DNA from: Stylophora pistillata | Taxonomy: Eukaryota | Length of the DNA stretch: 64,000 bases | Direction: 5' to 3' | Assembly: GCF_002571385.2 (NCBI RefSeq) | Contig: NW_019217912.1 | Location: 381,380 to 445,379, forward strand | Shown here: positions 23,925 to 64,000 of the stretch, piece after piece | How positions within the stretch are numbered: position 1 is the first letter of the stretch | Layout: each line of letters starts with the position of its first letter | Program-made: the position numbers and the translations under genes | The notes under the pieces: model-generated | Told to the model about the DNA's origin: nothing | Database searches by the model: none | What the model saw: only the letters and a program-made list of their open reading frames with translations

Positions 23925-26900
23925 TTATTTGTCTCGAGGTTTGGAAGATTTTTCTTTATTATTCTTTTTGTCTGGAACAGAAGATTTCTTCAAAGCAGCA
24001 AGACCAGGTTGCATGTTGAACTGGAAATAAAATGAATTAAAATGATGCACGTCACATAACAATAGTAAATACTGATGCATCTGATGTGATGGTCATTCAT
24101 AGGTGAGAAAAGTTTGATATCACGAAAGTGAACATCCCCAACTTTCACGCCGCAAAGCAGCCGGATAGAGAAGATAGATACATAGGAAATATCAGTTAAT
24201 CAACGTATAAATCGCAGCCAGAGACCGTATTGCGTTACACAATACGGGTACAAAAGCTATGACGTTGAATAAAAACTTTAAATGTGCTTAAAAAAGCTAT
24301 AAGGGTATGGTACTATCGATATACAGAAAAAATTATATAGGTTGATAGTTTCTAAAGAAACTGTTTGGGGCTGCGTCGGTGGGGGTAAAGATATATCATC
24401 AAAGTTGAAATGGTAAATTGGCCACCGTATCGATTACAAAAGCTGACGTTTCGAGCGTTAGCCCTTCGTCGGAGCGAATAGAGGAATTGTGGGTTGTGTG
24501 TACTTTAAAAGGCAGAAAATGGAACTACGTTATTGGTGGGAACATGGCAACGAGAAAAACACGAATAAATTAGTGGAATGAAAAGCGTTCCTTGATCCCT
24601 GTGGGATTTAGACTGCCGGTTTGAAAGATGAGCTTTTGTTCAAGAGTTTTACGGCTTTCCGTGCTACCTAAGTGTAAGGAAAGATAGCAGATTACCTTAT
24701 GTTGCTTAGAATGGTTAGGTAAATTAAAGTGTCTACCGACTGGTTTCGATGTGTCCTTGTCATTCTTTTCCACGTCGCGAAGGTGCTCTCGGAATCGGTC
24801 ACCTAGTCTAACCGATTCCGAGAACACTTTATGACTACTTAAAACAGAAACCATCAAGGATCCGAATAAAATCTTATAGAGAGATCCAGTGGCCATCTTT
24901 AAGTGTTTACCAGGAGGCTAACAAGAAAGCTAACTATTCCCAGCCCTGTAGGTTTTAAATTTGATATCGAAAGTTGTTGCATGGCTGAGAATGTACAGGG
25001 AGAACCTGTCTGAAAGGCTTCATCTTTGCACGTTGCTTTTTTACAAGTCTTTGCTTGCCAAGAATGTTATAAAAATCCGTTTCCAGTAGAAAGTTCTAGC
25101 TCGAGTTGACATAGGTTTACTAAGCTGTAATAAAGTTAAGGTATGCGCCTCTTTCTTACAGTACGCGACTCCATCATTTCTCCTCCAGGGACTTGGAAAA
25201 ATGATGCCATCTCCTTCTGGGGCACCATAGGAAGTTGCGATCCCTCAGATTCCGTTCCTTCTTGGGAAAACATGGCTGATGGTTGTGGCTCAGGAACACC
25301 AAAGCTAGAAGGATTAAAACCTGCAAATTGCTCTGTAGAACAAAAAAGATCCGCAGGTACGATCAAGGGGTTAAATAAGTCAAATATCTTTTCAATGAAT
25401 TTGAAACACTATCGGCTCAAAAATAAAATTGTGAGTCACAAGAACAAAAAATAGTAATACAAGTGATACTTATGATAATAGTAAGGACGATGATATTTAC
25501 AATAACAATGATAATGGCAACAATAATGATGATGATGATGTTAACGATAATAATGACACGGAAAACCGAATGAGGCGTGAATTTGTAAAGTGGTTACTTA
25601 TAATATTCTAAAATTGTCCCTGTTTGTAACTTGGTTGTGGTTTTGGCAGTAATTAACTGGCTGATTCTAAGTTACTTTAAATTTCTGCACAGATGTTTAA
25701 TAAAAATAAACTGAGTCAGTGACCTCAAACATGCAATAGTTTAACTTTGGTTCTTGTTCATTTGATCATTATTGTGTTATCTAGATTGCTGGAGTTGCAT
25801 GTCACTCTGATGTTTGCTTTCTAAAACATTAAAAGCAAAACTCGATCATTTTATATAAGTATAACAAGGGAAGGTGTGGACGACAGAGTCTTCAGTTAAA
25901 AAGAATATTTCAGTACCTCCGCTCATTTGCTGTGTTTCTGGTATCATGGGCTCTGGTCGTCTCTCTGGAAGTTGAGAAAGGCCTGTGCCAATCACAGAGA
26001 AAAACTAAATTAGCCTTAATTATTTGTGGTGTAACTCAGTTAAATAGCTCAAGTTGCTTTACCTTCCGCTTACAAGTTTCTCTAAAACTTTTCCGTTTAT
26101 GCGAGAGTTGAGAGGTAACAAATCTTAACGATCATACGCGTGGTTAGTCATCAAAGAGGGATAGATATGTAAGACGTACTATAGCTTTACACCAGCTTTA
26201 GATACCAATGCTGGCAATAAGCAATATACTCAAAAACTTGAACCAATTTCCACTTGCTAAAACATAACAAAATATCTCAACCAAATGATAAAAATAAAAA
26301 ATCTTAGTTTTTAAGATACTGGTAACGGTATACATTTGATTGACGTCTTGTCACCCATACCTGGCATTTCTGACATTTGTTCTCTCATTAAAGCACTTGG
26401 CATTTCTGACACGGGCTCTCTCATTGAAGAGCTTGGAGTCCAGGGACCGTTTGGTGTACCACTGAAAAAATTTGCACTCTGAAATCGAGGTACCTTGAAG
26501 AAAGGGTTATTTTGGGGTGATGGGAAACCGCTGAAGGGTGATAATGGAATTGGCATACGATCCGTCTGTAAGCCGGCCATTCTCAATGCCGAAAGTCCGG
26601 TAGGAGCCATCCTGGAACGAAGAGCTGGCATCATGGATGACTTAAAACTCAATTGTTGTTGAGGCTGTGCAAATGGCAATGACGGAAAAGCAGCACCTGA
26701 AAACGGTGATTCCGGTAAACCGAACGATGGTAAACCTCCAGAGGAAAGCGCTTGAGGCATAGCCGCCAAAAATTGTCGTTTTGTGGTTTTATCCTTCTTC
26801 TTCGAAGACTTTTTTGATGGTGATCGTTTCTTCCTTGAAGCCATCCCTGTCAAGAGATGAAAACTTCGAATCGGTTCATCAATAAAGTTCTTAGTCTCTT

Positions 26901-29900
26901 CCCATTCAACTCTTGGTGTCTACCCTTCGGCTAGACATTCACTGAGTCCGTTGGCTTATTATGTCATGATCAAACGAAGACGATTCTGTTCTGGTAACTT
27001 GGTGTTGAATATAACCATCCATATGTATTTAACTTACCTACTATTCCCATTCCAGGCTGTGCAGCAATTGGAATGCTGATACCAGTAACACTTGACAGTT
27101 GTCGAGAAAAGGCCATTTGAGATGGCGTCAAAGAAGAGCGCATCTGAGGAACTCTAGGGGCTGGGAAACCCGATGGAGACATTCCTATAGCAGGTGATGA
27201 CATTGCAGGAAGGCCAGAGCGACTCATGGCCCTGATGTCGAACGGTTGTGATGGTTGTAAAGACGGAAACATCCTGAGGAATGAGGTACTAAAAATTAAT
27301 ACTAGGAAGACTGTTTTCCTTTCCAAAGAGGTACTTTGAATAACATAATGATTCAAGGAACTTTTTGAAGCTGCATTTAATTGTTATCTGTGATAAACTG
27401 TAAGTTCTTCAGATATTGCACCAACTATTCCAAAGAGCTTTTGAAGAAAGGGATAGAAAGTTTCACGTAAAAGTAATAATTCATTAACAACCAGTATCAT
27501 TCAGTAACTCTTCTTCAGTAAACGATAAATATCAAAAGTCTCTGATATATGCAGGCGGTTCATCAAAATAAGCTGTAAGCTTCATTTACACTGAATTTAT
27601 TTGTACAACCACCAAAGACCTCTTTCGAAATTCTGGTTTTTACATGTTCGAACTCTGATTTGTAAGCTTACAGGTATTTGTCTACAAAATTATAGCACAT
27701 GAAAAATCATGACAGAAGTATGTCACATTTTAGCCTGTACCTTTCGTTTGTGTCAAAATGAATTTTTTAAATTCTTTTAAACATTAATGAATCATTAAAT
27801 CATTAGATGACTGATGTATGTATCGAATGTTTCATTGGCTGATTGACTGTATGACTGAGAGATGACCGATGAGTTTTTGTGATTGGTAATTTCCTAATTC
27901 TTGATTCTAGCTCACAAAGGGTGTCAAAATCGACCGACAGGTTTGGTTTAAGGCGTGAGATAAAGTAACTTACCTTGCTCCTGTGAGGCCTGGCTGCGCA
28001 TTGGATGCTGGGTATCTATAATGAAAGGGTCGAAGTCAGGAACAATTCAAAACTGATGAAATACTTTTGATTCAAATAATGGTGCAGCTTGAAGATAACG
28101 TCATTTGAATGCATCTGTGGCTATCGATAGTTCGTAAGTTTTTTTAACATTAGAAGACCTCAATCATACAAACTGTACTCCGCGCCTTCGCAGACACATT
28201 CATTTTCTGATGCAAAAACTCGGCCAAATTCAAATTGGTCATTTTTAATTTATATCTTCGTCTATGCTGAGCGATTTGTGATATGACAAAAAAAAAAGCC
28301 AACATGGAGTAAATAAATGTAGTTTTTCATATCAAGTGTTCTGAAGCATACAGTTTCACTGCCACGGTACACTGAAGTACACTTATTTCGTAACTTATGT
28401 CACAAGTGGCCAATCGTTGTTTCAACTTTATCTAAGGCCTATCTCATTCAATTGGGAAATATTTAATGCAGAATGCTATCTTGCATCATTGTTTAATAAT
28501 GCTATCATTGTATTGATCAGTTCAATTTGCACCAGTCTTTGACTCAAAAAAAGCACACGTTCACTGCGAGAATGGAAGGACGCATATAGTCTATTAGCTC
28601 GGCGTAGGGGAAGGTAGCTGCTTGACTTTTATGGGCATTCAGGACAAGTAAGCCGTACGGAATGGCAGGTTGATTATAGGAGTAATGAGAAGTGCAAGTT
28701 TACTTGGCTATTTATAGACTTTGTAAAGGTTTTCGACTCAGAACGGCATGCGACATTCCTTTTCTCGCAATGAACATAATGGGTCAAAAGGTATTGCTAA
28801 TTATTTAACATTATGTCGTCCGAATTTTTCAAGCGTGCCGAACACATGCCTTTAATCGAAAACTTTTACGTGGTGCTCTTTAGAAAAATATCAGACTTAA
28901 AGGCATTTCAAAAGTATTTAATTTTGCTACAAAATTACATGAACGTGAATCATGCAACAAACTCCTGACGACTCATAAAAAATTGTATCTTGGTTTACTT
29001 TACTATTGGGTTATGTATTGGCAACATTTCCTCAACTGCTTATCTGTCATTTGCTTCTTTTTCGACGACACAGTTCATTGGATTCGTCATCAAATTGAGA
29101 ACTACTTATATGTAATTTTAGTTGAGGACCTAAGAGGTTGGAATCCCATTGGTCGGCTCATGACTGGAGATATGAACGGCGATATCTGCCTTTTCATCAC
29201 TTTCTTCCCATGAGATGATTGGTGACGTCTGCTCTTAGATTTTAACTTTGTCGAGAACTCTCCAACCAATTGTTTCAGCTTCCCTCTTTTCTAAAAGTAA
29301 AGGCGCAAAAGAATAGTGATCTTCAACTTTGAAACTCACATACATTTTTCTTTACTGAGATATAGAAAAGTTTTGACAAAGGTAGAATTAGCTATCAAAA
29401 ATTCATTGTTTTGTGGTCCTTTAGCTTTATCTTGCTCAAAAATGATTCGCAATCATCGCATTACTGGCTCAGATGTAGATACTGAATAAATGGCAAGCAA
29501 ATCAGACTACTGTATCATATACGAATGCTACAGCTTACCACTTTCTCGGGACTGGAAGCGACATGCTCACGCGTCGTGTGGACATCGACATTAACATTAG
29601 GTGCTCCAACATGGATGGAGTGAGAGGGACGATCGCGGAATGGTAATTCTTGTGCTTGTGGAATAAGACCAGCATGGGCCGCGGGATAAAGCGACGCATA
29701 AGTACTGGCCAATGGATATGTGGAAGGGTAAGCCATTACGTGTTGGGGCTAAATATGAAATATACATATAGAAAACGAGCCATGTCTTAATGCTAGCATA
29801 CTCAGTAAGAGGAGCAGCAGATTTTTTCCATAGTCCCGAAGGCCCATGGAGCATATGTGGAAAGTATTCAAATATATAACTTATAAGTTAAGGTCTTTCA

Positions 29901-32900
29901 TAAAGTGTACTCTACTTTTTTTAACGCATTGTTTTAATTCAGCAGCTATACGAAAGAAATCCTATAGAAAAATTATTGCTGTCGCCTGCTATGAGGCCAA
30001 AGATCAAAATTTATGAACTATAAAGAAGTGAAAGAGTCCATAATGGGATTTTAATGAATGAGAAAAAAAAATGGTTATGTTCATGGGGTGATTTATCACA
30101 CATCCTTCATGAATTAATCAAACATTGACTGTGAGGATTTAAAGAAAGTAATAATAAGTCATAAAAGGCGTGTCTTACATAATTAAGTGGGGTGTAATGG
30201 TAGTATGGATTGACTCCATGAGCCATCATGTATCCTGGGTAGAGGTAGTGGAATGGATATGCCACAGCCTGCTTCTTGATTAGCTCTTTCGCCATCTCAC
30301 CAGGAATATCGGCTCTTCTAGAGGCTGCTTCTGTGGTTTGCTCCTCCGCTTCGGCAGGATACATGTTTGGATTTCCTTAATGAAGCATAATTCAAAAAGT
30401 TTTCAGAAGGAAGTTAATCTTCACTGTCATTCTCAAAATGTGTATCACGTAACCACAGTCGCACTATTCTTCTTATGCTAGCTCACCTGTTTCTCCAAAG
30501 GCTTCCATGGGTGATTCGCCCTCATTTGATGGACTCGCGCTGAAAGTAGACATCAAATCTTCGGACGGTTGCTGTTGGCCTTCCTGTGGCTGCCCCATGC
30601 TGCCCATTGCAGCTGCTCTGAGGGCATTTGCTCCTTCGTCAGGACTCATACCAGCCAAACTTTCAGTTGTCTCCGCTGGTTCGGGTGACGAGTGTTCTCC
30701 ATTAGCTTCCATTTCCTGATCATTAAAACCTTGGACTCCTGGGCTATTTGATAATCCCATAGGTGTTTGAAGTTTCTCAATTCCTGGAAATCCCATAGCC
30801 AAGCTCTGCATTTCTGAGTTTAGCAGGTCGGCGCCCTCCAGATGAGGACGTGTTCGTGGATCTTCTTTACTATCGCTACTCTCCTCCTCTCCTGGATTTT
30901 CTATTTCTTGTCTAGACTTTCCTTTTTCTTCTTTTAGAGCCTGCTTCTTGGGAGTTTTTGATCGTGTCCAGCATGGGCAGCCACAGCCACAGTGACGGAA
31001 ATGACATGGAAGAGGCCAGGTCCACCCACCAATATAACCACAACCGGGATGTACACATCCCCCCCATCCACAGCAGCCTGGATTGTAGTTTATCACTTGC
31101 CTACTCTGAGAATTTTCATCCAAAGAGCCAGGAATGCCTGATCTATAGTAAGGACCAAATGCCCCATGAGGAGGACCATACGGTCCGTAAAAGCCTGCAC
31201 CATACAGGCCATACGAATGAGCACCTAACAAAGGAAAGGCGGCCTGGTAACCGTGACCTGGGTACAGTGCTCCTCCCCATCCCATTCGACCTGGATGAAA
31301 ATTATTTACAAAGTGTCTGCCAGTGGCTTTCTCTTCCTTTTTTAGTTCTTTTTCTATTTTTTTAGATTTTCCATTTGGAATATTTGACTTAAAAAACCCA
31401 TGGTCTCCAGGGAAGCCATATCCTAAGGCCGGAGTCGGGCCAAACCCGTAAAATGGTGTTAAATCCCCATATAGTGCAAAAGGATAAGGAATGTACTGAC
31501 TATGACCAAAAAAGGGATATTCGTAATCCGTAAATGGTCCATAGCCTGACCAGGAAAAGTCAATCCCTGCAAATGGTTCATGTATGAATTCTCGCTTTGG
31601 GCTCTTCTTTTCTTTATCGTCTGTACTAGGAACTTCTGAGCGAAAAGCAAGACCGTGTCTAATTCCTAGACCATACCCATACCCATGACCCCAGAAGCCG
31701 CCTAATGGTCCCCATCCTGGGTAACCACCGTTTCCCGGTCCCCAACCTCCCCAACCACCCATGTAGCCAGGCCACCAACGTTTTTCTGCTTTATCTTTCT
31801 TGCTTTGCTTTCCGGGGATCTCTGCTCTCAGAAGAGGATGATAGCTTTGGCCAGAACCCAACATGCCCCATCCATGACCGAAACCTCCAAAATCATAGCC
31901 ACGCCCCCAGTCGCCTAAAGCACCCCAGCCCGGATATCCTTCATTTCCTAATCCCCATCCACCCCAACCTGCCATGTATCCCGGCCACCATCTCTTGTTA
32001 GCTTCAGTGTGTTTCACGGAGGATCTGGTTTGTCCTTCTGATGATTTCTCAGAGATGTTGGAACGGTAGTATCCCTGGCCCCAGGGAATAGGTGTGGGCG
32101 TAAATGGCACTGCAGCAAACCCTAAAGACGGATAAGCATAACCATAAGCTGGAAAGGCAAATGTCGGTAGCATGCGACGATTTAAGAGTGCTTTTTGCGC
32201 TGGCTTTTTAGGACTTTTTTTGGAAATGTGAGACTTGTGCCATCCTCCAAGTGACGGATACCCAGTCCATCCTGCATGACGGGATGGATGTCCTCCCCAG
32301 TGAAATCCCGGCCACTGTGAGACAGTACCCCAAGGGTGGCCATGGTGGTAGGGCCCGAGGTGGTAAGCATCTATTACTTGCTTTTTCTTTCCCTTGTTTT
32401 CTTTGTGGTCTTTTGAAACCAATAAGGGAAATAAAGGCATGGGTTAATTATCAATTAATCATAGTAATTACTTATAATATAACCAACTTTCCCCTCGAAT
32501 GCCGTCAGTTCACTGATTGGATTTAATAAGTGAATTGATGAAATGTACTAAATATCACTATTTCCTCGGAGTAGGCCGCCTAAGCATATCGTTAAGTGAC
32601 ATTCTCTCAGAGAGCCTCGAGACTGATCCAGTAATACGAGAAACCACTGAACCAATTAATCCAACCTGACTTCTTTAAAACAGCCACCCTTTCATGTCAA
32701 CATGATTTTACATCGTGCGACACTTCAAACTGGTGGCATTTATGTTAATTTTTTCCATGGATATTCCTCTTGCTTGTATGATTGTCTTCAGCTTGTCAAA
32801 GATACTTCCAAAATAAAAGAAATTGGGTTTATGTTTGTTTTAAATCTGGTACCCCTGTCCTTTACAAGAAGGTCGGGTGATCCGTCGCTTTTTTTTTAGT

Positions 32901-33546
32901 GCTACATTGCCCATAGCTAAGTTTACGAATGCAACTGTTTTACCACAAGAGGTTCACAACATCGCTTACGGCTATGATCTTTTAAGGCTGAAAAATGGAT
33001 TAAACCATTTAAGTTTGAAGTAGCTTGAAAGCTAGTAATATCTATTGCTCAATGGAAACATTGTCTTCAATCATAGAAAGGAACGTGCTGATATTAATTA
33101 AGCTGAGATGCACCAAATGAAATCTGGAATGAAATTTAAAAAAATGCCTTTAGAGATCAAAGCAATAATCCATCATTGTTATTATTGTTATTATTTAGTC
33201 TTAGAATGAAAATATTTAATCTCAAATGGTATAAATTACTGCAAAAGACGCTCCTCTTTGTCACCCTGATATACGTGAGAATAACAAACAATTTTTAACT
33301 TAAATTACGGAACGAGAAACATATTTTCATATTGCACTGCGCAATATACAATCCTATACTTGTCGTACCTTTGCCTTGCCCTCCACTGTTTGCCTTTGAT
33401 CTTTTCAACAGATCGCTTTCTTCAAATTTTTTTTGATTTTCTACTGTGGCCGTATCTTCCAAAATGTTTGGTCTTCCTCTAATTCCACCGATGTAAACGC
33501 AAAGGAATGCAATAAACAACAGCACTTTCGACGCCAAGGCTGTCAT
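23925..33546 (-). CDS. Large secreted modular polyprotein precursor (~1260 aa), Gly/Tyr/Trp/Pro/His-rich then Met/Pro/Ser-rich; exons 33546-33369, 32409-30487, 30375-30179, 29748-29539, 29290-~29106, 28015-27974, 27273-27038, 26846-26361, 25982-25917, 25332-25160, 24020-23925
   Basis: Signal peptide MTALASKVLLFIAFLCVYIGGIRG; the 655-aa ORF and the smaller minus-strand ORFs join with compatible intron phases at GT-AG sites. The exon 5 donor is uncertain (29106 or 29130, both phase 2). Last exon FNMQPGLAALKKSSVPDKKNNKEKSSKPRDK*. Confidence 0.75.
24310..24812 (-). mobile_element. Penelope-like element 3' fragment: GIY-YIG C-terminus plus terminal repeat with hammerhead motif (24442-24475)
   Basis: RLGDRFREHLRDVEKNDKDTSKPVGRHFNLPNHS..STESRKTLEQKLIFQTGSLNPTGIKERFSF; shares ~180 bp with 8671-8848. 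Confidence 0.85.
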
Positions 33547-35018
33547 TATGATCGCAAACTTCCCCTAGAGGCTTCCAATTTGAAATTGAAGGCCACGATG
33601 AAGAAGCTTCTTCAAACACTCTCGATTTCAGGACTTTCTTGGTGAGCGTAGAATATCCAATAAGTTTACCAATTTAACGTGGCAATAGGCCTCGTTGGTT
33701 CAATAAAAAATTAGCGCCTCGGCTATTGGTTGGTTTTCCACCAGCGCAGGTCCACTGCAAAACTTGACTTGTTAACTAAGAGAATTTTTGATCTGTTTTG
33801 AATAAATTATTAATTCGTTATGGCTACTGTCAAAATAACTATTAGCGGTTCTTTTGTTGAAAGGAAAACAACTATGGCGGATGAATTATTTTGTCTCAGA
33901 CCGTTTCGTATTCAACAACAATTAAATTTTAAAGTAGTTTTAAGGTTTCCTCAACTGCTTCATCTACCAATATGGTGGGTTTTCAAACAAGTGTGGATCA
34001 GGTTAGATAAGTCTGACTCTTTTATTAGGGCAAATTTTGAAATAAATGATTAACACAATTAGTCTGAGGGTTCTGAAGAATAGAAATGAAAGGATAATTG
34101 AACTAAAACTTTATACTTTGACACTTAATAGCTTGTGGAGTTTGCATAGTAATTCAAAAAATCACTCTGGACTGTTATAACTTCACAGTGATCAATTTAT
34201 ATAGCAATTTTACCATTCTCTCCTGGTTTATGGACATTAGCCTGAGTAACCTCTTTAATAAGGTCATTATCGCCAATTTATAACTCACCCAACCAGTACG
34301 TAGAGCTTCTTTCTTGCTCTTTTGAAGCGTATCGGAAATATTGGTCATTTTATTGTGAGAAGAGCCGTATTCTTAAAAAAGCCTGGCAAACTTAGCTGAT
34401 AGTTAGCAGAGGGGATGGTTAGCTTAAAGATCGACTTTAGGGGCTATTTACTATTCAAAGAAATTAATTCCCATTTGCCGAAACTTCGGGAAAATTATGT
34501 TCCAGTGTAGTTTAGAAGAGATCCAATAGCTATCTTTCATACAATACCTCATTCAATGAAACGGGTCGGTACTGTGAACAGCTTAAAGCTGTTTGTACAG
34601 GGTATTCTTTCATTAAACATACAAACAAAAGAAAACTGACTTTTTCTACGGGCAAACTTATTAGAGTTAACGAATATTTAATCTCTGAAATAACAAAAAG
34701 AAAAAAACAAAACAGAGGTAGGAGTTATTTGAGTTTTACGATCGGCTAACCCTGTAGAACACGATTTCTACACAAATTTATACAGTACCACCAACAAAAG
34801 AGTTTTTGTTTAGGACGATATCGGAAACATTAGCAATCTTTTAATTCTGATACTAACAGGTCTAAAATCGAGCAATTGATAGGGCTCTGCAGGTGCCATT
34901 TCACGCCATTTGAACAAATTTTACAATGACATAACATTACGTGCTTTACGTAATCGCAAATAGACAAAAAAATTGCCGAAACAAAATATTTTTCACTTTA
35001 AGACAGAAGAAAGTAAAC

Positions 35019-36855
35019 ATGAAACTTTTGCTACTAATTACTGTTTTATTATCCCTGTTAGACTTGACACCGGGCAAGCCATTCAAAGAACGCGAAGGCG
35101 AAGGTAGTTTCATTTCCGACAATAAATCCAACGTTGACGATGAGTTGGAGACATCTGTCGTAGATGGCGATGACGAAGACGAAGAAGACGGAAGTACCAC
35201 TGAAGACCCAAGAATGAGGCAGAAGAGAAGTGATAATACGGAGCTCGAAAATGACGAAAGAAGTGGTGATTTCAGTGGAGATGACTTAGAAACTGAAGAA
35301 AAAGAAGGACAGACTAGCAAAGAAGACAAATCCTTGCTAAAAAGTGACCGTCCAAAGGGTAAAAGCGAGACAGACCTGCAGATGCAAAATACATTGGGAA
35401 TCCAACAACCTTTCACTATCACTGCAATGCAACCAGGAAAGCCTCAGGACCCATCTCAGAATGTGAAAACTCCCGAGCCGTTTTCTTTGAATTTCGCCGG
35501 TCCTGCTGGGAAAATAGAGATAACCCCATTTGAGCCTGCCATCAACAGAATGAATAAAGTCAGAAGGCGATGTATGTGTCCATTACCTTGTGGACCAGCG
35601 CACGCATATGAAGTGATTGGCTGCAGCGGACCTTACAGCATTCCTTGTGGTGGATGCATTGGTGGTGGTTGGCCCGGTCTTGGATGTGGAGGCTTCGGCG
35701 GTTACGGTGGCCCTGGTGGTTTTTATGACATGATACCTCATCCAGGATGGGGTGGCTACCCCTTATACGGTGGATATGGATTTGGGTGTGGAGGGTGTGG
35801 GGGCTGCGGTGGTTGCGGTGGTTGCAATGGATGTGGCTGGGGAGGAGGAGGCTGTGGACATCCACCAATCGTGATGTGCTGTAAGTGCTGCTTTTAATTT
35901 TTTAAGAAATGATCGATGATAGATAAGAATAAATAACTTGATTAAGAGTTAAATGATACCGAGGCATGAAGACGGTAATAAGAAGTTTCATTCATGACAA
36001 AATGGCTAAAGGAAACATGTGATGTTCACCATGAAACACTTGTTTCAACATAAAAACAAAAACAACAAGAAAAGTAAAAGAAACAAACAAACGAGACCAT
36101 AACGACCATAAGGGGAAAGAATCCAGAAAACTGTCAAATTCTTTTCTTATACGGTACAGAGAGATATCCTTTACGTAGGTAGAGAGAACCATAATTATGG
36201 TGGTTAACAACTTTTAATTACTTTACGCGACGTTACTTTAAACACAAAAACTATCTCCGCGCTACCTCATTTTTCTACTCAGTTCTAGATTTAGTATACA
36301 GCAAAGTATAGCAACATAAAAACGCAAACGAATCCGCGGGTCTTTCACTCAGGGGGCTTCTCTTGGGAGAGTCTTGTAACTGGAGGGTGGTACTTTTTTT
36401 TTTAATCGGTTGGGAGTGTACGATCAGAGAATTTTGCTTCAAAAACTTTTCAGTCTAGCTCTAACAATATTGGGACAATAATTCAAAAAACGACAGCGGA
36501 AATTTCGATCTTAAGTTTTATATTTCGCACAGTGTATAATTGATAGTGCAGTAGCTAGCCGACAACACAAAATAATACCATTCAATACACTCCTTTTGGC
36601 TTCTCTCAGCCACTTCTATTTTGCCAAAGTAAAAAGCTAACGAGGGCTTTTCTAACGAAGTCAACAAATGGATGGGGGGAAGACTTATGACAGGTGTTTT
36701 TGCCACTTCAAGCCTTTAATTTTTTACTATCATCAGGTTGTAAAAAGAATGGTAAAGAGGGGGAAGGGGAACAACCCAAACCTCAAAGAGACAACCGCAA
36801 TGTCTTTCCAGCCAAGCCACGTCATGTCAGAAAGGAGAAGCCCGGCCGTCCATGA
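35019..36855 (+). CDS. Secreted precursor (~326 aa): acidic propeptide plus Gly/Cys-rich mature region with (GCG)n; exons 35019-35880, 36737-36855
   Basis: Signal MKLLLLITVLLSLLDLTPG; D/E-rich pro region with RQKR; RRR-CMCPLPCG...GCGGCGGCGGCGGCNGC; donor T|GTAAGT at 35881 and acceptor CATCAG|GT give MCCCKKNGKEGEGEQPKP...GRP*. Confidence 0.8.
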
Positions 36856-38966: not shown

Positions 38967-39975
38967 ATGAAAGCTTTCACTGTTTTCGGGTTGTTACTAG
39001 TTTTGCTAGTTGTCAAAGTGACGTTTTCCCACGGTGGAGGGGAAGGCACAAACCTTCCTCACTACGAAGAAAGAATGGAATCCACAGAACAAAGCAGTTA
39101 TATCGAAAAGAGAGAATATGTAGAGAAGATGCTGGGTCCTGACTCGGGCGTCGAGGGTTTGCAACAAAAGATTGGAAGAAGAAAGGCAGAAAGATTAAAC
39201 GATGACGACGAAAGAGCAACCGAAAAGGGACGAGGGCAAGAAAAAAGTCCTCAGAAACGTTCTCATCCTAACGTCTGCCCACCTGGATGGATCTCACCGT
39301 GGGATTACGCTGGTTCACACGGAGTATACGGCTCAAATTGTGGCATGTGTGATGGAGGCTTTGGTGGGGATGGATTTGACTCTGGGTGTGGCTATGGTGA
39401 GTGTGTCGGATGTGGTGGATGTTGCGGCGGTTACGATGGATGCGAATACGGTAAATTCTATGGTGGAATATTTCGTCCGGGTGGTCGTCGTTTCCCGCGG
39501 CTGTTTAGCGACGGGCGTATTCAGCACGTTTGGTTGAGTAAGTGAAATAAACCGTGAATGTTTCAAATGTTTTTTCATTCACCTTAGTTACCAGAACGAT
39601 GTCCTTGTAAGTGTAAAATGAAGTGTTTACAGTGATAACTGATGGTGTAATAAAATAACTATTTGTGATTATATTAAGTCCATCATACCCTGGCATTAAG
39701 GCTAAAAATTCCCTGTTTCAGATTTTACTACTTTAAGGCTCCTTTCATTGAATTCATTCTAGTGAACCTGAACATGAATGCCTCTCAACAGGGAAAACTG
39801 AATTAATAGTAAAACTTAGCTTTAAGTATTAGTGTTACTTAATTATCCTTTACAATGCTTAACAATCCAAGTTTCCCAGGTAAATTATGTCACCTTATAA
39901 TTAATTGTTCTCACAGGAGATGGCCGAACAAGAAGATTTATTCCTTCTCCGTTGCTGGTCCCGCGAAACTTTTAG
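38967..39975 (+). CDS. Secreted precursor (~209 aa), Gly/Cys-rich mature region; exons 38967-39537 and probably 39917-39975 (unspliced alternative ends 39545)
   Basis: Signal MKAFTVFGLLLVLLVVKVTFS; charged pro region; QKR-SHPNVCPPGW...CGYGECVGCGGCCGGYDGC; donor A|GTAAGT at 39538. Confidence 0.72.
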
Positions 39976-46265: not shown

Positions 46266-47653
46266 ATGATTTTTACTAAGATTTTTCTCATTGTTTCTCT
46301 CCTCTTAATACTCTTTAAAACGGAGACTTGCGAAGGCGTCCACCGCGAGAGAAAGAAGGAAGACGCTCATAATGAAATAACCGCTCTGAGAGGCAGAATA
46401 AGAAACCATAATCTGAACCTCGATAACCCAAGAATGGTAAAGGGAGGGAAAAGAAGAGTCTCATGTTTTTTCTCTCCTCAAAAGCTCAAAGCTCGACGAT
46501 CTCGTCATATATCAAAGCGTTGCTTTGATGTCAACCCATACGGTTTTTCTCCACCCGCGGTATCCTACCCATGTGGAGGCATGAGTTGGCCTACGGTTCC
46601 TGATCCGTGGTGGCCAGAATACGGCTGGATGGACGGATGTGGCTATCCCCTGCCAGGAGGTGGACCGTGGAGTCAACCGTATCCATGGTTCCCTCCTGGA
46701 TGTGGTTGTTGCTGTCGTACGTATTATTCGTGTACTTAACAAGACATTCATGCTGAACTTAAAGGATTATATTTGATAGATAATTTGGGATGTGAAATCA
46801 ATTTAATTGACTTATGAAACAATATATTGAGCAGTCAAAGAAATACAGCTGCTATATTTTATTTTGCAAAGCTTGAAAAGGAGTTAACGTTCCTGCACCT
46901 ATTTGGCTATTTCACATCTTTTCACTGATAAGGCATTACAAAACACAAACCTTAGAACGTAAGGCTAGTGTTCTCCGCAGGCTATTGACTGGCATGTAGA
47001 AGTAGAGAGCGCTATTTATGCAATAGCGAAAATCAGACCTGAAAAAAATCAGGCCTGTACGGGATTCGAACCACTGACCTCTGCGATACTAGTGCAGCGC
47101 TCTACCAATTGAGCTAACAAGCCAACTGGGAGCAGTCCGTTAAGTTGATTCGTAATAAACCCGTGATGATAAATCAGATACGATGAATATATGAAGTTCA
47201 TATATTTTGAACTGCGGTTATAGATACGTAAGATGCACGATCCTTGCAGTAGAAGTAGAAGTAGAGTTGACGAATTTTTATTTTTCACTAGCAACGGAAG
47301 AAAGTGGCAAAGAAGAAGGTAAGCCGACCGAACCACCCACCGGCGGGAATCAGCCTACAAAGGAAACAAAACAGGCTAAGACACACCCAACCAGCCCTAG
47401 CGGAGGCAGTTCTGGCTCCGCAAGCCCTACGAGTAGCCAACCTACCACTGGCACGCAAGGTACCTTGGGGACCCTATCAACTGGTAGTACAGCCCGTGAC
47501 TCCTCAAGAAACCTCAGACTGCATTCACCAACCGCCTCGGTGCTAAGAAGCCGTTTGAAGTCTCTTAAAGACAGAGCGAGGCTTATGAAACAGCATGTGC
47601 TGAGAAAAAATTTTCCTGGACGCTCTTTGAAAGTTATCGTGGAGAACCTCTGA
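46266..47653 (+). CDS. Secreted precursor (~270 aa), Pro/Trp/Gly/Cys-rich segment then Thr/Ser/Pro-rich tail; exons 46266-46716, 47292-47653
   Basis: Signal MIFTKIFLIVSLLLILFKTETCEG; SKR-CFDVNPYG...PPGCGCCC; donor C|GTACGT and acceptor CACTAG|CA join in frame to ORF 47207-47653. Confidence 0.75.
47008..47254 (-). mobile_element. Single copy of the 251-bp tRNA-Thr-derived repeat, in an intron
   Basis: Reverse complement of the 20601 unit, diverged; flanked by direct repeat gtagaagtagag (46996-47007, 47255-47266). Confidence 0.85.
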
Positions 47654-49997: not shown

Positions 49998-51129
49998 CAC
50001 AAACTTTGGAGCAAGTTTTCTCTCTACGAGGCAAATAGTTGACTTGTAACTCGTATTCTTGCGATTTATTTTGTTAATATTTGATTAGTGAGCTGACACA
50101 ACGTGTAAGGTAAGAATTGTTCAAATGAAAATAAGACATTCGTGGATCCGACCGGAAATGCCATTTGAGAATTACAGAGTACCTTCCAAGGTGTGAGGAA
50201 AGACATCATCCGAAAGAGCTTTTCCGAATTTTTCTTTAAAATTAACATCAAGACGCAGTTCTTCTCCATCTTACAACTTGAAATATCATAATTTTACGCC
50301 ATTTAAATACGTCGGAAAGGCTCCGCCTACTAAACGGGTGCAGGGAGTTTTCCAGTTTGTCTTTCCGTGGGTCAGTTTTCCTTGGTGAATAAGTCGGGGG
50401 TTATTAAGAGTACATCTGTCCACCAAAAATCTAAGGATAGCCCTAAACTGAAATGGAAAACTATGTGTCAGTCCCACCTGGTTGCTAACACGGTTTTGGC
50501 AAATATAGCTGCTAGGTAGCCTGAACTACGTCTATAGTGAATAATCTACCTGGGTTATTCCCCAAGGATCGATCAAAGAATTAAAGCCTAGGTGGAATTA
50601 ATTTTTTGTCCTCAGAAAAATAAACGTTTCCGGGCTCAACATATGCATGTATGGGGGTCCTGATTACCGGTCAAAAAAAAGTCATAGAAACAGAGAGAGT
50701 GCTTTAAAGCTTTTTCTAGAAGCATCTAACTTTAATTCCTTATCTGTCTACTGTCATGGCAAATACACAACATAATAATAAGGGCAAGACTTGAACGCTT
50801 TATCTTTCTCTGGAGAGTTGGGAACACTGTGTCTATCGTGTCCCGTAAATGGGGTGAGTAAGGATAAGGAAAGCTTCTTTAAATTTTGTCACTTTTGCTC
50901 CAAATTAGTTGACCGCTTATGCTGAGGAAATCGCAAAGAAACTGTAAAAAAATATCACTTTAAAGTACAAGCATCTTAAATTTAAGCTCCATAAAATTAT
51001 GATTTTTGTAAAGTATTTGGCACTATCAAATGCACAGCGATGATCCTTTAATGACCGATGACTCACTGTTAATCTTGCGTGTGGGAACATAATTTAGTAA
51101 TTCAAATTAAGGAATCGAAAAGGGTCAGC

Positions 51130-51130
<1 letters not shown>

Positions 51131-51162
<32 letters not shown>

Positions 51163-52011: not shown

Positions 52012-53896
52012 ATGGCGTTTCTGTCCTTTTGGATTTGGGCCGTCCTGAGTAACGTTGTGATAATAGGCATTCTTGCTGCTCCAAATCCAATATATGGAAA
52101 TAATCAACAACGCCGTTCTCTTCCCAATGGAAATCGAGATTTAAGAGCATCAAGCCTTGGACGTCCCTTATCAAAGTTCGCACAGGATCAAAATGTTAAC
52201 TCAGCGTCGTCTTCACCAACCAAACAGATCGTTCAAACTCAAAATTACAGAACCACACAACAATATTCATTTCCATCGAAATTCATGCCCTTGGGCAAAA
52301 ATCAACCACTACAGAGTTTCACGCAAGATGATCAGCCACCAAAGAAGATGACGCCACCAGGTGATCAGCAGAAACAGAAAGCCGTGGAGAACAAAGACGA
52401 GACGGTTAACACTAATAAGTGTGGGTGTGGGTGTGGCTGTTGTTGTGGAGCAAATAATGATAATAAGAATGGAGAGACTGCAAACAACAAGGACAAAAAC
52501 TGCTGTTGCTGCTGCTGTTGCCAGCCTCCCTGTTATTGCTGCCAGCCATGTTGCTGTTGTCAGCCATGCTGCTGCACTTGTTGTCATCAAGACATTTGCC
52601 ATCACCACGAACATGACCACGAATGTTGCGTGCATCACGATTGCTGCGTGCATCACGTGCATCATATCACTCATGACTGCCCCTGCGCCCAGCCATGCTG
52701 TTGCGGATGCCCACAAACATGTGGCTACTCACAAGCTTGCGGCTGCCCACAAACTTGCGGTTGCCTACAAACTTGCGACTGCCCACAAGCTTGCGGCTGC
52801 TGTTGTCAGGGGTGCAGTTGTGGGATCCCGGGGCCTCCTTGTCATGGGTGTGCTGGTCTCTGTGGCCTCCAAACTCCCTGTAACTGTGGGTTATTAGGAT
52901 GTGGATGCCCTGGATGCCCATTCCAGGCCGTACCTTGTGGCTGCTGTGGGTACACTAATGAAAATGCTGGAGATCAAAATTATCTTTTGCCTTATAAAGA
53001 AGGTAATTCAAGTATTATTTAGCGTAAACTATTCATTGTTGTTCTCAGTCTTTATGCTCCTTTTTTTGCATTCTAGAAAGAAGTAAAGAACTAAAAGGGG
53101 AGGAGGAAGAGAAAGCAGCTCGGCGTCAACTTATTCTTCCACCTGGCTACCTTTTCCCGGCTTTTCGACGTGTAGAATCCTTCAGTTCCCTTAAAAGGTT
53201 AGTCAATCCATTTTCAGTTAAATTCCCTATGAAATAAATGTAGGGTTTAACACTGGAAAGCATGAATTGATTCATACTATCTTGTTAGTGTGGTTGTATT
53301 AGTGTAACGCAACTATACAGGGCACAACAATTATTTTTCTGCTGGTTCTTTTAAATATAGAGTTTTCTCATTTCCTACATTACCTCTCTAGAGAGCGAGA
53401 ATTTCGAGAGGTATCTTTAAAGTCACAATTCACTTTAAAACTGCGTTTTATTCATCAGGGCAAGTGAAAACTGCAATGAAATTCAAATAATTAAAAAGTT
53501 ATCTCAATGCACATCGAAGTTAGGGGATTTTTTTTCACCAAATTTTGGAAAAACTACGTTTGCATAACTGGATAGTAAACACTAGTTTATGTGTTCTGTT
53601 TATTCTAGTCTAGATAGGTCTGCTCCGATCTAATCTCCGTTTTTGTCAGCGCCATTAAGTCCTAGGAACAAGTACGATTTCAAATGAAGGGTGTTCCTTT
53701 TAATATTACTTTCATCTTACTGTGTATCAAAAAACAACTATTTTGATTTTGATCTGAGCTGAGACTGTGAAGGATTTCCCCCATAATATGTCTATTTTAA
53801 ACCAACAGGACCAAAGTTCCCTTTTCTAAGCGAATGTACCGACGGATGGCACGCCTGAACACTCGACTGATACCGTATCGTTTATGGTTCTGGTGA
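52012..53896 (+). CDS. Secreted ultra-high-cysteine/His-rich protein (~399 aa); exons 52012-53002, 53077-53197, 53809-53896
   Basis: Hydrophobic N-terminus MAFLSFWIWAVLSNVVIIGILA; Gln-rich pro region; CCCCCCCQPPCYCCQPCCCCQPCCC, His-rich CHHHEHDHECCVHH, (CGCPQT)-type repeats. Downstream exons are phase-compatible. Start codon uncertain. Confidence 0.75.
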
Positions 53897-54930: not shown

Positions 54931-57736
54931 ATGAAACCGAATATTATAGTGACTTCTTTACTTTCTGCTGTCATATTCAACACCGCCGTAATTTCCGGAA
55001 GAATTTTTAATGGGAGTGATAAGGGTACCTCGAGTAGTTACTCAGGAACGACTGGAAAGAAATATGGTCAGCCAAAAACTGGCCATAGGATTTCCTCAAA
55101 GAGGACATCAAGGAAACTACCAGTGGCAGGAAGTTTGTTAAGGTGGGTGATTTTATTGTCATTGGTTCACGAGTTTAAAATCTTTATAGACTAAATAGAA
55201 AGGTAACATGACATTGACAGAAGAAGAGTGACAACAAATCTCGAAATGTCTTTTGAATCGAACACAAAATTTAAAGAAGGCGAAGTCAAAACATCATGTT
55301 ATATCTAAACAATGAAGAAAATCAAACAAATTTAACATCAAACGACTGAAGACACTGAGACCACTGACCTGTAAGACACAAGGCAACTTGTTAGGCTTTC
55401 GAAAAGTCAGATATTTTCTTCTTTGTTATCAATGACGCAAAATGAGAAAGAAGGAGAACTATCTTTTTATCTGTGATCGGTAGATTGTGGTGCAATAAGT
55501 AGAATGTTTAAGCCAAGGGGAAAAATACTCGAATGGAATCTAATCAAGAAGGCAGTAGTCCTATGATGTGTTGATCGAGCTTGAGAAAACTGGCCGATAT
55601 CGATAGAAGTGAAGCCTCTTGACTTAGAAAATCTTCACTCACAATATCCCCATTACAAGAATGTAAATGGGTTATGGTAAACTGCCAGAGACTTGATTAA
55701 GTCAGCTGTATGTTTACCCAAGATCGACAAACATCCGTCCCTGATGGAGCTACGATGCTCTTAGTCATCTGAAAGAAGCTAATATGTCTCTGCCTGATGT
55801 GGATACAATGGTGTACCGTGTTGACGATAACGAAGAAAGATATTTTAGGATTTTTGCTACAGAGACATTTCAAGTTGGATTTTAATTAAAAAATAATATA
55901 GATCATTTACTATCCCTTTTGTGACTTTTTACTTGAATACAGGGGTTTGTGGCATCGTTGAACATTAATTCCCACAAATAAATTACCTTTTCATCATTTA
56001 AAACCAAATTTTGGCTCAGTGATACACGAATGTTTGTGTCCCCCAAAGCTGTGACCCCTTTATTCCGTCCCTGAAACAAGGTACGTGTATTCTTGATATT
56101 AGATTTTATATCATTCAGTTATGATTTATCTTTAACAACATTCTGAAGGCTATTTTTCATTCTTTTTCTAGACCCGAGTCCCTGCCTAAAGCACCACAAA
56201 GCAATGATGTAGGAAAAAATAAAGGGAAAAGATGTGGTAAGATTTAAGTGAACTTTCATTTTAAAATGTCCACTGCAATAGTCTCATAGTTTTATTACGT
56301 TTGAGGAAGAAAATTAAATTCTATGCAACTGTGGTTGCTTCTATGTAAATTTAACTACCATTCGCGGTACCTTTAGGATCTGGATAGTCGAACTGCAATA
56401 CTTTCTCACCTGCTAATAAAATTGTTGGTTTAAGGATAAATTTCTTTTTTCAGGATGTTGTATTTGCCACGGTTGTCAGCCTTGTGTTGGCGGCTGTATG
56501 CCAAATTGCGATTGTGACTGTTGTCGCCATGAATGCGATGAAGGTTTGTCAATTTCTATCCGCATGACGAATATTGTTACAATTTACTGTCGATTGGCCA
56601 CTGAGTGCAACTGTTAATAAGGGTTAACTGAATGCATGCGGCATGAAATTGATAAGCTTTGAAAAATGAAACAATGTCAAAGAACTTGACACTACTCTTG
56701 GAAACTATAGAGAGGAATTCATAGACACCAAGTCTGACTAGCAGTTAACAGGAATGCACTGCTTCATGCAAAATTTGTGATGCTTTTCATTTACTGAATG
56801 CAATTGAGTTGGTAACAGAGCAAACGATGATTTTTACACCCAGTAGAAGGATGTGACGTACACCATTTTAACTTAGTTTCTTACTGTGTACACTCGATCA
56901 CAAAGTCGTCATTTTGAATTTATAGCTCGCTGCTGGTCAAAACGTTTGCCTGATATGTAAAAGAGAAGGTACCATTTACTCTATAATATAAGCTAAGATC
57001 AAGATACATTGAGTCAGATGATCGAACCACAAAAAAAGATACTCCCCTAATGCTACATTTCCAACATTAACGAGTCAATTTGAGGAATGATGCGATATTT
57101 GGGGTATGCAACCATCCCATGGACTTCTAAAGGCAACACGACTCCGGCATAAAAAACGGAGAGTCACACAGCAGCACCATGCAACGATGTGGTGAGGCTA
57201 CCGACGGCATCACGATGCCCTTTCAACATTTAACATTTCGTACACAAAAAAAGGTCTTGACAGTCCTATTTTGCTGGTAGCTAATGTAAGGGTCAGTCAA
57301 ACACTTGTTTGCTCAAAATTTATTGTGTATATCGTATCTATTGTGTATATACTCCATTCATCCTTTAGGTTGTTGGTGTCCTATTCCGGGTGCCGAGGAA
57401 GCCCCTAAAAAGAAGCCCGCAGAGGAGCCATGCTGCTCTCCTTGTTGTTGCCCATGTTGCCCTGTTCCAAGTTGTCACCATTGTTGTCATCATATTCATC
57501 ATCACCATCACCACTGCTGCCCTTGCTGTCATTGCTGCCACTGCTGCCACTGCTGCCACTGTTGCCCATGCTGTTGCCACTGTTGCCATTGCAAACGATC
57601 TCAAGGGCCGTTATCACCAGCATTCTTAAGAAGACCTCTCTTCTTGTACATGGTTACTCCCTATCCTTCAATCAGTGGACTTAACGCAAAGGACGCATGG
57701 TCGCTGTTACAACATGGGCCATTACGCGTTCACTAA
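54931..57736 (+). CDS. Secreted Cys/His-rich protein (~244 aa); exons 54931-55142, 56172-56236, 56454-56543, 57369-57736
   Basis: Signal MKPNIIVTSLLSAVIFNTAVISG; GKR-CGCCICHGCQPCVGGC...; His6 tract and (CCH)n repeats, then KRSQGP. Spliced frame is continuous (735 nt). Confidence 0.68.
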
Positions 57737-62583: not shown

Positions 62584-64000
62584 ATGCATGTGAAGCTAGT
62601 AACCGTTTTATGCCTCGTATTCGTCTCTTTGGCCTTAGTGGAAGGAAAGTCTATTAACAAGGAGAATGGTGAGGATGACTATATTTACATTTTGATGTTG
62701 TCATTGTTGATGAGAAGTAACGATTACATTTTGGAATTTTCAGTTGAGAATTCAGGGAAAAATCTAAAAGGAGAACAAAATAATATCATGGTAGAGCTGC
62801 AATCCGCAAATGAAAAGAGCGACTCTGGAGAAGGTAAGCGATTCGGTCAAGCTACGCGGTACACTCTTCAAAGAATCAAGACTGGCTGTGTTCTCTCGTA
62901 AAGGGTTTAGTGATACCGACGATAAAAGTCTTTTTCAACATTGCACCTTAGATAGATCATTACATCACATTTTTGTAGTATTCCACATGACCAAGACACT
63001 TTTACATAACTGGACCGTGTTGCAAAAGGCCCACACTGATGAAACAATCTTTCATTTCTCAGCTTTCTTTGTTCCTCCGTTTGAATTCTTTAACTATCTG
63101 ATTTAGTCTAAAACTCTTAGATACACAAAGAGAAGATATAGACTTCCAGAAGCTATAATTGTTCTTAGGATAAAACTTGGCCGAACCGTTTAATTTTGGA
63201 GAAATTAAGAAAGCATGCTTCTTTGCAAAGTCTCGGGTCGCTCAAAACTGACGATGATCTAAGAAAACAAATATGGAAACATACTAAACTTTGATGAATT
63301 GAAAGTTCACTCAGACACAACCAGCTGTGGTATAAAACGTTTTTTCTGGTTTTGAATGCAGACCTTCTCTTTTCGCACTTCATCCCCTAGAATCAAGTTT
63401 GTTTTGTGTTATAGAGTCTTTACTAGCCAGGCGGTTTGCGTCTACCCCCTTTGACTCATCGCTCTATCCGACAAAGTTGAAATAACTTTCAAAACGATCG
63501 TACTTGATGAAGGGTAAAGGATTGATTTGACTTATTTTCTGGTCATGCAGAGCAAAAAGTAAAGGATCCTTGTGTATGCAGAGGAAAACCTAAAAAGAAA
63601 TGTACTGAGGAGACGAAGAAATCAAAATGCCCTGAAAAATGTAGCAGTTTGTGCGCCGAAAATAAGGAATGTGAACACAAAGACCAACCCAAGAAATGTG
63701 AGCAAAAAGATCAACCCAAAAAATGTGAGCAAAAAGATCAACCCAAAAAATGTGACTGTAAGTCACAAGCAGAAAAATGCAAAAGTGTTGCCGCATCTGA
63801 AGGTGAGAAGAAATGTAAATGCAAGGGAGGAGAAGCCAAGGCAGGAATTCCAAGACCAGCACCCCACGCCGTAGGAGGCGCCATAATACCATTGTCTTCC
63901 ATATCGCCTCAGCTTGGTATCGGCAAAAAAGTCAATTCCTCAAAGAAGTGCTGCTGCGGTGATTGTTGTCACGATTGTTGCTGCGATTGCTGCCATGACT
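62584..64000 (+). CDS. Secreted Cys/Lys-rich protein, runs off window end; exons 62584-62668, 62744-62833, 63551->64000
   Basis: Signal MHVKLVTVLCLVFVSLALVEG. Exon 3 is open in a frame not in the ORF track: EQKVKDPCVCRGKPKKKC...(CEQKDQPKK)x3...SKKCCCGDCCHDCCCDCCHD. Confidence 0.72.

Follow-up and report, generated by a model that had tools for sequence, protein, structure and literature searches.

A conserved, tandemly expanded cluster of genes for putatively secreted, Gly- and Cys-rich proteins in Stylophora pistillata and other stony corals

The subject of this study is a 64,000-nucleotide stretch of the Stylophora pistillata genome (contig NW_019217912.1, G000:C129:381380-445379), hereafter the window, in which an initial annotation had seen a 40-kb cluster of at least ten orphan genes for secreted prepro-proteins. 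We built gene models from lists of open reading frames (ORFs) and splice-site analysis, compared them with loci annotated in other corals, and obtained ten protein-coding genes, G1 to G10, between 23.9 kb and the window end at 64 kb. The splice sites of G6, G9 and G10, and those at the 3' end of G1, could be placed only approximately, and the queries used in similarity searches were single exons. Signal peptides were judged by hydropathy alone, as the maximum mean Kyte-Doolittle value over 9 residues; by this measure all ten products begin with a signal-like hydrophobic N-terminus (maxima of 2.1-3.5), in agreement with the expected number of secreted precursors. As had been proposed, the genes form a cluster, one that is conserved and has expanded in tandem, but 40 kb underestimates it: it extends at least 60 kb past the window end, for a total of more than 100 kb.

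G1 (23925..33546, minus strand) is large, has multiple exons and encodes a modular, polyprotein-like, putatively secreted protein. Its signal exon (~33355-33546) is followed by a large exon at 30473-32440, with an ORF of 655 residues, and by exons at ~30176-30364, ~29521-29745 and ~29135-29290. Further colinear coding blocks lie at ~27980-28093 and 27033-27257, and a candidate 3' end at 26311-26853, perhaps reaching down to 23925. The gene is colinear with a 1285-residue gene of Oculina, and its exon order is that of a 919-residue product (P0063) encoded on a 3.4-kb Logan contig from another coral. The G1 blocks are uncharged, of the Gly/Trp/Tyr/Pro type, measure about 45-60 residues and end in the motif [aromatic][aromatic][R/K]-S-x-[I/V/L]-[P/S]; after each block comes a Lys/Glu/Ser-rich spacer that ends in KR before the next one. 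G1 has 5 copies of the block-end motif where about 0.2 would be expected, a count reached in none of 500 shuffles. In G1 and two downstream genes, the counts are 5, 3 and 4, where about 0.1-0.2 would be expected, again with 0 of 500 shuffles reaching them. Inside or just past the 3' part of G1, a 108-codon ORF on the minus strand (24570-24896, ..RHFNLPNHS..) has no Pfam match and looks like a mobile-element fragment.

The neighbouring gene G2 lies on the plus strand. Its exon 1 (35019..35880) encodes a signal, an acidic pro-region with RQKR, a conserved middle, the site RRR/CMCPLPCG (here and below, a slash marks the processing site or splice junction) and a Gly/Cys-rich segment ending in ..IVMC, and is closed by a phase-1 GTAAGT donor at 35881. 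Exon 2 (36737..36855), with the acceptor cag/GTTGTA, completes a CCC cluster and continues with KK and a 36-residue tail rich in Lys, Pro and Arg; it gives a tblastn match to the spliced tail of Oculina P0007. In all, 14 homologues of G2 were found.

Four further genes follow on the plus strand. G3 exon 1 (38967-39537) comprises a signal, a charged region, a QKR/S site, a Gly/Cys segment and a conserved tail ..GGRR FPRLFSDGRIQHVWL, and exon 2 lies at 39917-39975. The gene is colinear with a 225-residue gene of Oculina, and the sole GTAAGT model yields the annotated length of that gene. The C-terminus (39460-39537 plus 39917-39975), with its tail ..GGRR-FPRLFSDGRIQHVWLRDG-RTRR-.., is the part best conserved against Oculina (72-82% in tblastx); flanked by Gly and basic sites, it resembles an amidated peptide. 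G4 exon 1 (40763-41300) encodes a signal, a Lys-rich region, ERRH/CFCG.. and a non-repetitive acidic/aromatic segment of 95 residues ending in ..QQGWC, and exon 2 (41792-41901) adds CC and a charged tail; a 217-residue Oculina orthologue has 52% identity and the same phase-1 intron, and Porites has a match as well. In G5, exon 1 (42711-43176) carries a signal, a pro-region, NKKR/CFLGCPYDC.. and a Gly/Trp/Cys segment ending in ..NNHGWI, and exon 2 (43392-43867) carries CC, a Gly-rich part, GYGWGN repeats and a basic end. Its orthologues in Oculina (287 residues) and Porites (353 residues) share the phase-1 T/GTAAGT donor. G6, modelled as exon 1 (46266..46739), encodes a signal, a basic pro-region, SKR/CFDVNPYG.. 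and a Pro/Trp/Gly segment ending in GCGCCC, and is colinear with the last Oculina gene of the locus (L001), a 349-residue orthologue.

G7 is read from the minus strand: exon 1 (49679-49997) encodes a signal, a short region and a Gly/Cys segment ending in ..GFPISPVC, and exon 2 (48222-49414) encodes 397 residues that are His/Pro/aromatic-rich, then acidic, then a basic tail. The two are joined by a phase-1 GTAAGT donor at 49678 and a cag/GTTCC acceptor at 49414, and a 476-residue Porites orthologue has the same strand and the same donor. In G5 and G7, ORFs that appear separate (42711-43208 and 43544-43867; 49671-50000 and 48222-49409) thereby merge as exons of one gene.

The last three genes, on the plus strand, are the richest in Cys. 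G8 exon 1 (52012-~53000) encodes a signal, a Gln/Pro-rich region, an Asn run, CCQP-type Cys repeats, the His block HEHDHECCVHHDCCVHHVHH and further Cys repeats; probable 3' exons at ~53096-53248 and 53783-53892 contribute a Lys/Glu spacer and an RRKR-type site, and relatives carry a conserved GYLFPAY peptide. Orthologues of G8 were found in Porites and Desmophyllum, the latter with three tandem copies against one in Stylophora and with the blocks downstream conserved. The public model of one of these relatives, Desmophyllum pertusum P0015 (L002:10001-11818), reads the Cys-rich core of G8 in a wrong frame (..LAVASLAVANL..), and its N- and C-termini in the right one. G9 (54931..57736) has a signal exon (54931-~55150) with an SSKR site, a Cys exon (~56426-56545) and a last exon (~57332-57736) that encodes (CCH)n repeats and six consecutive His. 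The gene contains a 9-bp tandem repeat, and Desmophyllum (L002) preserves its exon blocks with the frame intact and 60-88% identity. G10 opens with a signal exon (62584-62668) whose phase-1 donor is at 62669 and which is conserved in Porites; its Lys/Cys-rich exon (63526-64284), built of KK/CCCGDCCHDCC.. blocks, runs past the window end.

We examined 80 kb downstream of the window, with coordinates continuing from window base 1. At least six further gene-sized ORFs lie in the first 60 kb. Additional Lys/Cys genes lie at 63.5-67.6 kb, and a group of Gly/Cys exons at 71.8-80.9 kb have a WPCMWPCCC domain in common. There is also an ORF of 840 codons that encodes a Cys block and (GGGAA)n repeats. 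PolyB and PolyC, located 32-38 kb beyond the window end, have the same block grammar as G1. G1, PolyB and PolyC repeat the logic of basic site and block inside one chain, with uncharged blocks of Gly/aromatic or Gly/aromatic/Cys type. At 41-60 kb past the window, two ORFs, 4313 and 2047 codons long, adjoin each other (L013:1280-L014:4218 and L014:4222-L015:362; G000:C129 ~486659-505741); they are parted by a single TAG and gave no match in a Pfam search. They consist of His/Pro/Val-rich repeats (..IYHPPPEIYHRPDIVVHRPP..) with boundaries of FGKS.V and a Lys-rich spacer, like the polyprotein grammar of the cluster, and may together form one giant secreted structural gene. The composition had been described as graded along the locus, from aromatic and Gly-rich to Cys/His-rich. 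This gradient proved to be an effect of the window, because it is not continued downstream, where Gly/Cys, Gly/Ala and Gly/Tyr genes are followed by the His/Pro-rich giant ORF.

The G+C content of the window varies between 34 and 46%, with no compositional break. The left flank holds ordinary domain genes: a PA/peptidase-M28/transferrin-receptor-like (NAALADase-type) gene on the plus strand (2162-8250, peptidase part 6390-8250) and a tetraspanin exon on the minus strand (16198-16452). The initial annotation had seen no intervening housekeeping gene; at 47051-47123 on the minus strand, between G6 and G7, ARAGORN calls a tRNA-Thr(AGT), which may be a true tRNA gene or the tRNA-derived head of a short interspersed element. 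An antisense ORF there (..GSNPV) is a translation artefact of the tRNA.

The genes hold up in comparison with other species: orthologous, colinear loci were found in Oculina, Porites, Desmophyllum and the sea anemone Actinostola, as the synteny check proposed with the initial annotation had called for. The Oculina patagonica locus, reached via the G2 orthologue, is colinear with the window at 27.0-46.7 kb; its six genes of 1285, 286, 225, 217, 287 and 349 residues match G1-G6 in both order and strand, and none has a Pfam domain. The Porites lutea locus retains G4-G5-G7-G8-G10, and a single Desmophyllum locus has the G8 copies followed by the G9 exons. Gene order is thus conserved in three other coral genera, and it is older than the split between complex and robust stony corals, because Porites lutea keeps G4-G5-G7-G8-G10. 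The description as orphans therefore did not survive: G1, G2 and G8, all of those searched, have orthologues in stony corals, and those of G1 and G2 extend to a sea anemone.

Transcription, whose absence had been named as grounds for rejecting the proposal, was found. The stretch 34900-36000, of which G2 exon 1 makes up 78%, is present in both DNA and polyadenylated (polyA) RNA runs, labelled as one organism or as 'coral metagenome'. PolyA RNA runs as small as 115-189 million letters contain 73-77% of its sampled words. This indicates that the transcripts are abundant in adult tissue. An intron-less Montipora contig of 1552 nt (L017) carries a G2 orthologue with the same exon junction, and on the 3.4-kb coral contig mentioned above the 919-residue product unites four or more of the G1 exon blocks.

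Several of the genes share one exon plan. In G2, G4 and G5, exon 1 ends in ..C (or I) at a phase-1 T/GTAAGT donor, and exon 2 opens with (c/t)ag/GTTG(T/C), which completes a CCC cluster; the charged tails encoded by exon 2 measure 36-158 residues in these genes, and that of G7 measures 397. The phase-1 T/GTAAGT donor is also present in the orthologues of Oculina, Porites and Actinostola. In G2, G4, G5 and G6, the segment before the intron opens with a Cys motif right after the basic site (RRR/CMCPLPC, ERRH/CFCG, NKKR/CFLGC and SKR/CF, respectively), and the central segments have Cys clusters at both ends. Because of their common phase-1 T/GTAAGT intron at the terminal Cys cluster, G2, G4, G5 and G7 are diverged paralogues on one exon plan, and G6 is probably a further diverged one. 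The common intron design, the recurrent layout of basic site, Cys motif and terminal Cys cluster, and the synteny in stony corals bear out the view of the locus as one evolutionary unit. A search for paralogues elsewhere in the genome with G1, G2-type and PolyC queries returned self-matches only; it is insensitive to low-complexity sequences and missed the paralogues within the cluster too.

The G1 exon has 15 homologues in corals (e.g. Acropora cervicornis) and one in the sea anemone Actinostola sp. (P0070). The module order of P0070 is that of G1, and KRWWPGY.GGWGGWG.GN.GYPGWG is invariant in two places. In Actinostola, the G1 orthologue stands head-to-head with a 310-residue gene without a Pfam domain, which is the G2 orthologue (tblastn E = 6e-11): it has the same PFEP-type motif in the pro-region, Cys directly after a basic site, and the phase-1 donor. 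An MFS (major facilitator superfamily) transporter adjoins the far side of this gene, unlike the flank in Stylophora. Because the head-to-head pair is present in this sea anemone, G1 and G2 predate the split of corals and anemones as a pair, and cannot have originated for the skeleton. The pair is also present in a further hexacoral-like host, represented by a metagenome contig (L008, SAMN12856790): its G2-type protein P0019 branches outside all crown stony corals, at 37-44% identity, and the gene adjoins G1-type exons. A G2 profile matched 7 of 1.84 billion representative sequences; the Actinostola orthologue was missed in this search, which hence does not prove absence outside corals.

As had been stated, the products match no known domain. 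A Pfam search of 16 cluster products (E<=1) gave no meaningful match, sequences in the PDB, including structures of the minicollagen Cys-rich domain (CRD), gave none to the G1 profile, the G2 profile or the G8 sequence, and the ESM Atlas gave no usable match for G1. RefSeq and GenBank name orthologues of the cluster genes only 'uncharacterized' or 'hypothetical'. Full-text literature searches, including the motif strings WWPGY, GYPGWG and WPCMWPC, found no description of the family; the cnidocyte, spirocyte and matrisome literature does not mention such proteins, and 'keratin-associated protein' was not found in a coral context. The family thus seems to be undescribed.

What the products share is a layout of basic sites and unusual segments. 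In G1, the site KR/WWPGY occurs twice and is invariant from coral to sea anemone; in G2, the sites RQKR and RRR/C are invariant, together with invariant Cys positions (alignment A1, 10 sequences from 10 species). The others have QKR/S (G3), ERRH/C (G4), NKKR/C (G5), SKR/C (G6), QQRR/S (G8), SSKR/T (G9) and KK/CCC (G10). A basic site had been claimed for every gene, which is true of nine; G7 has no clear dibasic site. In G1-G6, the basic sites that end the propeptide are conserved (KR, RRR or KKR) ahead of a segment started by Cys, and conserved multibasic sites bound the repeated units in the manner of convertase precursors (KR and the block-end motif in G1, RQKR and RRR in G2). Gly reaches 17% in the large exon of G1 and 18% in exon 1 of G2, and Cys reaches 18% in G8 overall, 25% in the last exon of G9 (with 15% His) and 27% in G10. 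All genes carry Gly/aromatic, Gly/Cys or Cys/His segments, in line with the earlier description, except that Gly/Cys richness does not extend to the main segments of G4 and G7. The mature segments are nearly without Lys and Arg. An AlphaFold2 model of G2, built on 10 sequences, reached a predicted local distance difference test (pLDDT) score of 42 and was confident for the signal helix only, with the remainder below 50; the proteins are therefore predicted to be disordered.

Among known proteins, the closest likeness in design is to those of the cnidarian stinging capsule. Minicollagens and cnidoin have a propeptide ending in basic residues and Cys-rich ends around a variable middle (background in PMC6161364, PMC12549020). 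Like minicollagens, NOWA and cnidoin, the coral proteins would be secreted, with a basic-ended propeptide and a variable middle between Cys-rich ends that possibly polymerise by disulfide exchange, and like them they are taxon-restricted and have several paralogues. Unlike minicollagens, the cluster lacks a Gly-X-Y stretch, polyproline, the CX3CX3CX3CX3CC domain and Pfam or PDB matches; its pro-regions are much longer (50-180 residues), and its charged C-terminal tail is on a separate exon. A six-frame regular-expression scan of 144 kb for CX3CX3CX3CX3CC gave one near-match (in G9, 56474-56524, with a first spacing of 2) and trivial poly-Cys matches. Collagen Gly-X-Y or polyproline was neither matched by Pfam Collagen in the 16 products nor visible in the translations. 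The resemblance to minicollagens is one of design, not of membership.

Other systems share single features. Spinalin is a Gly/His-rich protein of Hydra nematocyst spines that is thought to form a hardened, disulfide-linked structure, and it is not known outside hydrozoans. Like the coral proteins as predicted here, it is secreted, of low complexity and Gly/His-rich, with a charged end, whereas the coral proteins add Trp/Tyr/Cys-rich blocks and a convertase grammar (spinalin is cited in PMC9935875). Keratin-associated proteins (KRTAPs) and silkmoth chorion form tandem clusters that mix high-Gly/Tyr and ultra-high-Cys classes for a presumably disulfide-cross-linked matrix, and the CCQP-type repeats of G8 add to this likeness. 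KRTAPs, however, are cytoplasmic, without signal or propeptide, whereas the coral members have a signal, basic sites and introns, and the Keratin_B2 and Keratin_B2_2 profiles did not match G8 or G9 (E<=1). Since no profile of KRTAPs or another known family matched, any likeness would be convergent, as had been supposed. Galaxins and CARPs/SAARPs are secreted coral proteins enriched in scleractinians, some with an acidic N-terminal region, Cys-rich repeats and a dibasic site. Compared with these, Cys and Gly are far more extreme in the cluster, no galaxin-type di-Cys repeat of about 30 residues was seen, and RefSeq does not name the orthologues in this way; G1 and G2, paired in Actinostola, are not restricted to calcifying corals. 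Finally, the NLP/CNC precursors of C. elegans and shepherin-type Gly/His polyproteins of plants are clustered, secreted precursors with Gly/aromatic peptides between basic sites; compared by design, the coral blocks are longer, uncharged, often Cys-capped and deeply conserved.

We tentatively favour, at somewhat less than an even chance, the interpretation that the cluster encodes convertase-processed disordered precursors whose Cys-capped segments polymerise into insoluble material, most likely inside cnidae. In such a scheme, the proteins would enter the secretory pathway with their sticky blocks held soluble by the charged pro-regions, spacers and tails. Convertases of the furin/PC type would cut the conserved KR, RRR and KK sites in a late compartment, and the freed segments, with Cys clusters at their ends, would self-associate and be locked by intermolecular disulfides, metal bridges perhaps contributing in the Cys/His members G8-G10. 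The product would be an insoluble material, and the site may be a post-Golgi vesicle of the cnidocyte, where it could serve as wall, tubule, spine or spirocyst thread; the scleractinian expansion would supply variants. The predicted disorder and the cross-linkable residues would fit a hardened material. The cnidocyst vesicle is favoured as the site because G1 and G2 are common to corals and anemones, the layout is minicollagen/cnidoin-like and adult transcripts are abundant; the presence of the pair in a skeleton-less anemone and the likeness of layout would lend this indirect support. That the cluster supplies the building blocks of a cnida structure specific to hexacorals, the thread or capsule of the spirocyst, assembled on a new principle with solubility from charged pro-regions and tails, terminal Cys exposed by convertases, and hardening by Cys/His members through disulfides and metal, is a narrower proposal that we regard as unlikely. 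The spirocyst is the obvious candidate for it, because spirocysts are confined to Hexacorallia, as is the G1-G2 pair in its observed range.

Several points weigh against cnidae as the destination and against the scheme itself. The cluster lacks the canonical Cys-rich domain of minicollagens, as well as any collagen stretch or polyproline; that the basic sites are cleaved we infer from their conservation; and G3-G10 were found only in stony corals, in searches that were limited outside them. The conserved tail of G3, with its amidation-like GRR and GRTRR, fits a bioactive peptide better. The promoters yielded no convincing common motif, either in a k-mer screen or when scanned for AP-1, CRE, Sox, Fox, POU, E-box and TATA elements. 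A Sox-like ACAAWG is found in 7 of the 9, with a background of 0.41, but given eight tests this does not reach significance.

The restriction of G3-G10 to stony corals would suit a structural or adhesive extracellular matrix made by cells other than cnidocytes (epidermal gland cells, calicoblasts or desmocytes), with the same processing and cross-linking followed by export, and taking the form of a skeletal organic matrix framework, fibres anchoring tissue to skeleton, or a larval or settlement cement. We consider this possible but not likely. The coral skeletal matrix is Cys-poor, which counts against it, as do the conservation of the G1-G2 pair in a sea anemone without a skeleton and the RefSeq label 'uncharacterized protein', where orthologues might have been named after the Acropora skeletal matrix proteins in Swiss-Prot. 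On the other side, long stretches rich in Asp and Glu make G2 and PolyC resemble coral acid-rich proteins, although the invariant convertase-type sites that follow acidic regions suggest their removal; tryptic skeleton proteomes would miss mature segments with almost no Lys or Arg, and calicoblast-specific genes are enriched for genes of Scleractinia age and for secreted acid-rich proteins (PMC8162421). The polyprotein grammar with repeated KR sites, the acidic pro-regions ahead of C-terminal peptides, the abundance of adult transcripts and the highly conserved C-terminal peptide of G3 between GRR and GRTRR would also be expected of precursors of diffusible bioactive peptides, whether antimicrobial or neuropeptide-like Gly/aromatic ones (as C. 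elegans NLP/CNC) or Cys-rich defence peptides (as the pocilloporid damicornin). Such a function is doubtful, since the blocks are 45-110 residues long, near-uncharged and up to 25-60% Cys, unlike cationic antimicrobial peptides or short neuropeptides, no fold is predicted, and the G1 blocks are almost unchanged from coral to anemone, whereas immune peptides usually evolve fast.

Two other explanations concern parts of the evidence. G8-G10 and the downstream Cys genes could be secreted metal-binding, storage or detoxification proteins, metallothionein-like but vesicular or extracellular, with a function unrelated to that of G1-G7. Their Cys content of 18-27% over whole exons, the (CCH)n repeats, the six-His run and the His block HHVHH, conserved in Porites, would agree with this; but these members belong to one conserved cluster with the rest, which they resemble in having signal peptides, charged tails and basic sites on either side of the Cys blocks, and no Pfam metallothionein matched, so that we think it quite improbable. 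That the genes are chance ORFs in low-complexity or tandem-repeat DNA can be set aside almost entirely. Some Cys/His stretches are encoded by tandem repeats of 9, 18 and 27 bp, and the public Desmophyllum model P0015 reads part of G8 in another frame; yet frames, gene order and splice sites hold in four coral genera and an anemone, and there is evidence of the mRNA type, which refutes this explanation for G1-G5, G7 and G8.

Public coral annotations handle these genes badly, with wrong frames, split genes and 'hypothetical' names. Some of the sequences are among the most extreme in animals: whole exons contain 18-27% Cys, with blocks of almost nothing but Cys and His, six His follow one another naturally, and Gly/Trp blocks are the same in coral and anemone. 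If convertase-processed precursors of an insoluble cnida material are what the cluster encodes, it would provide testable candidates for cnida parts missed by proteomics, as they have few tryptic sites and would be insoluble, and a clean case of convergence with the keratin-associated and chorion gene clusters. It would also suggest a general design rule for self-assembling secreted proteins, in which a charged, chaperone-like propeptide is followed by convertase cleavage and by polymerisation via Cys-capped ends. Comprising over 16 genes in about 100 kb, the locus would then represent a large, old and undescribed biomaterial toolkit of reef-building corals.

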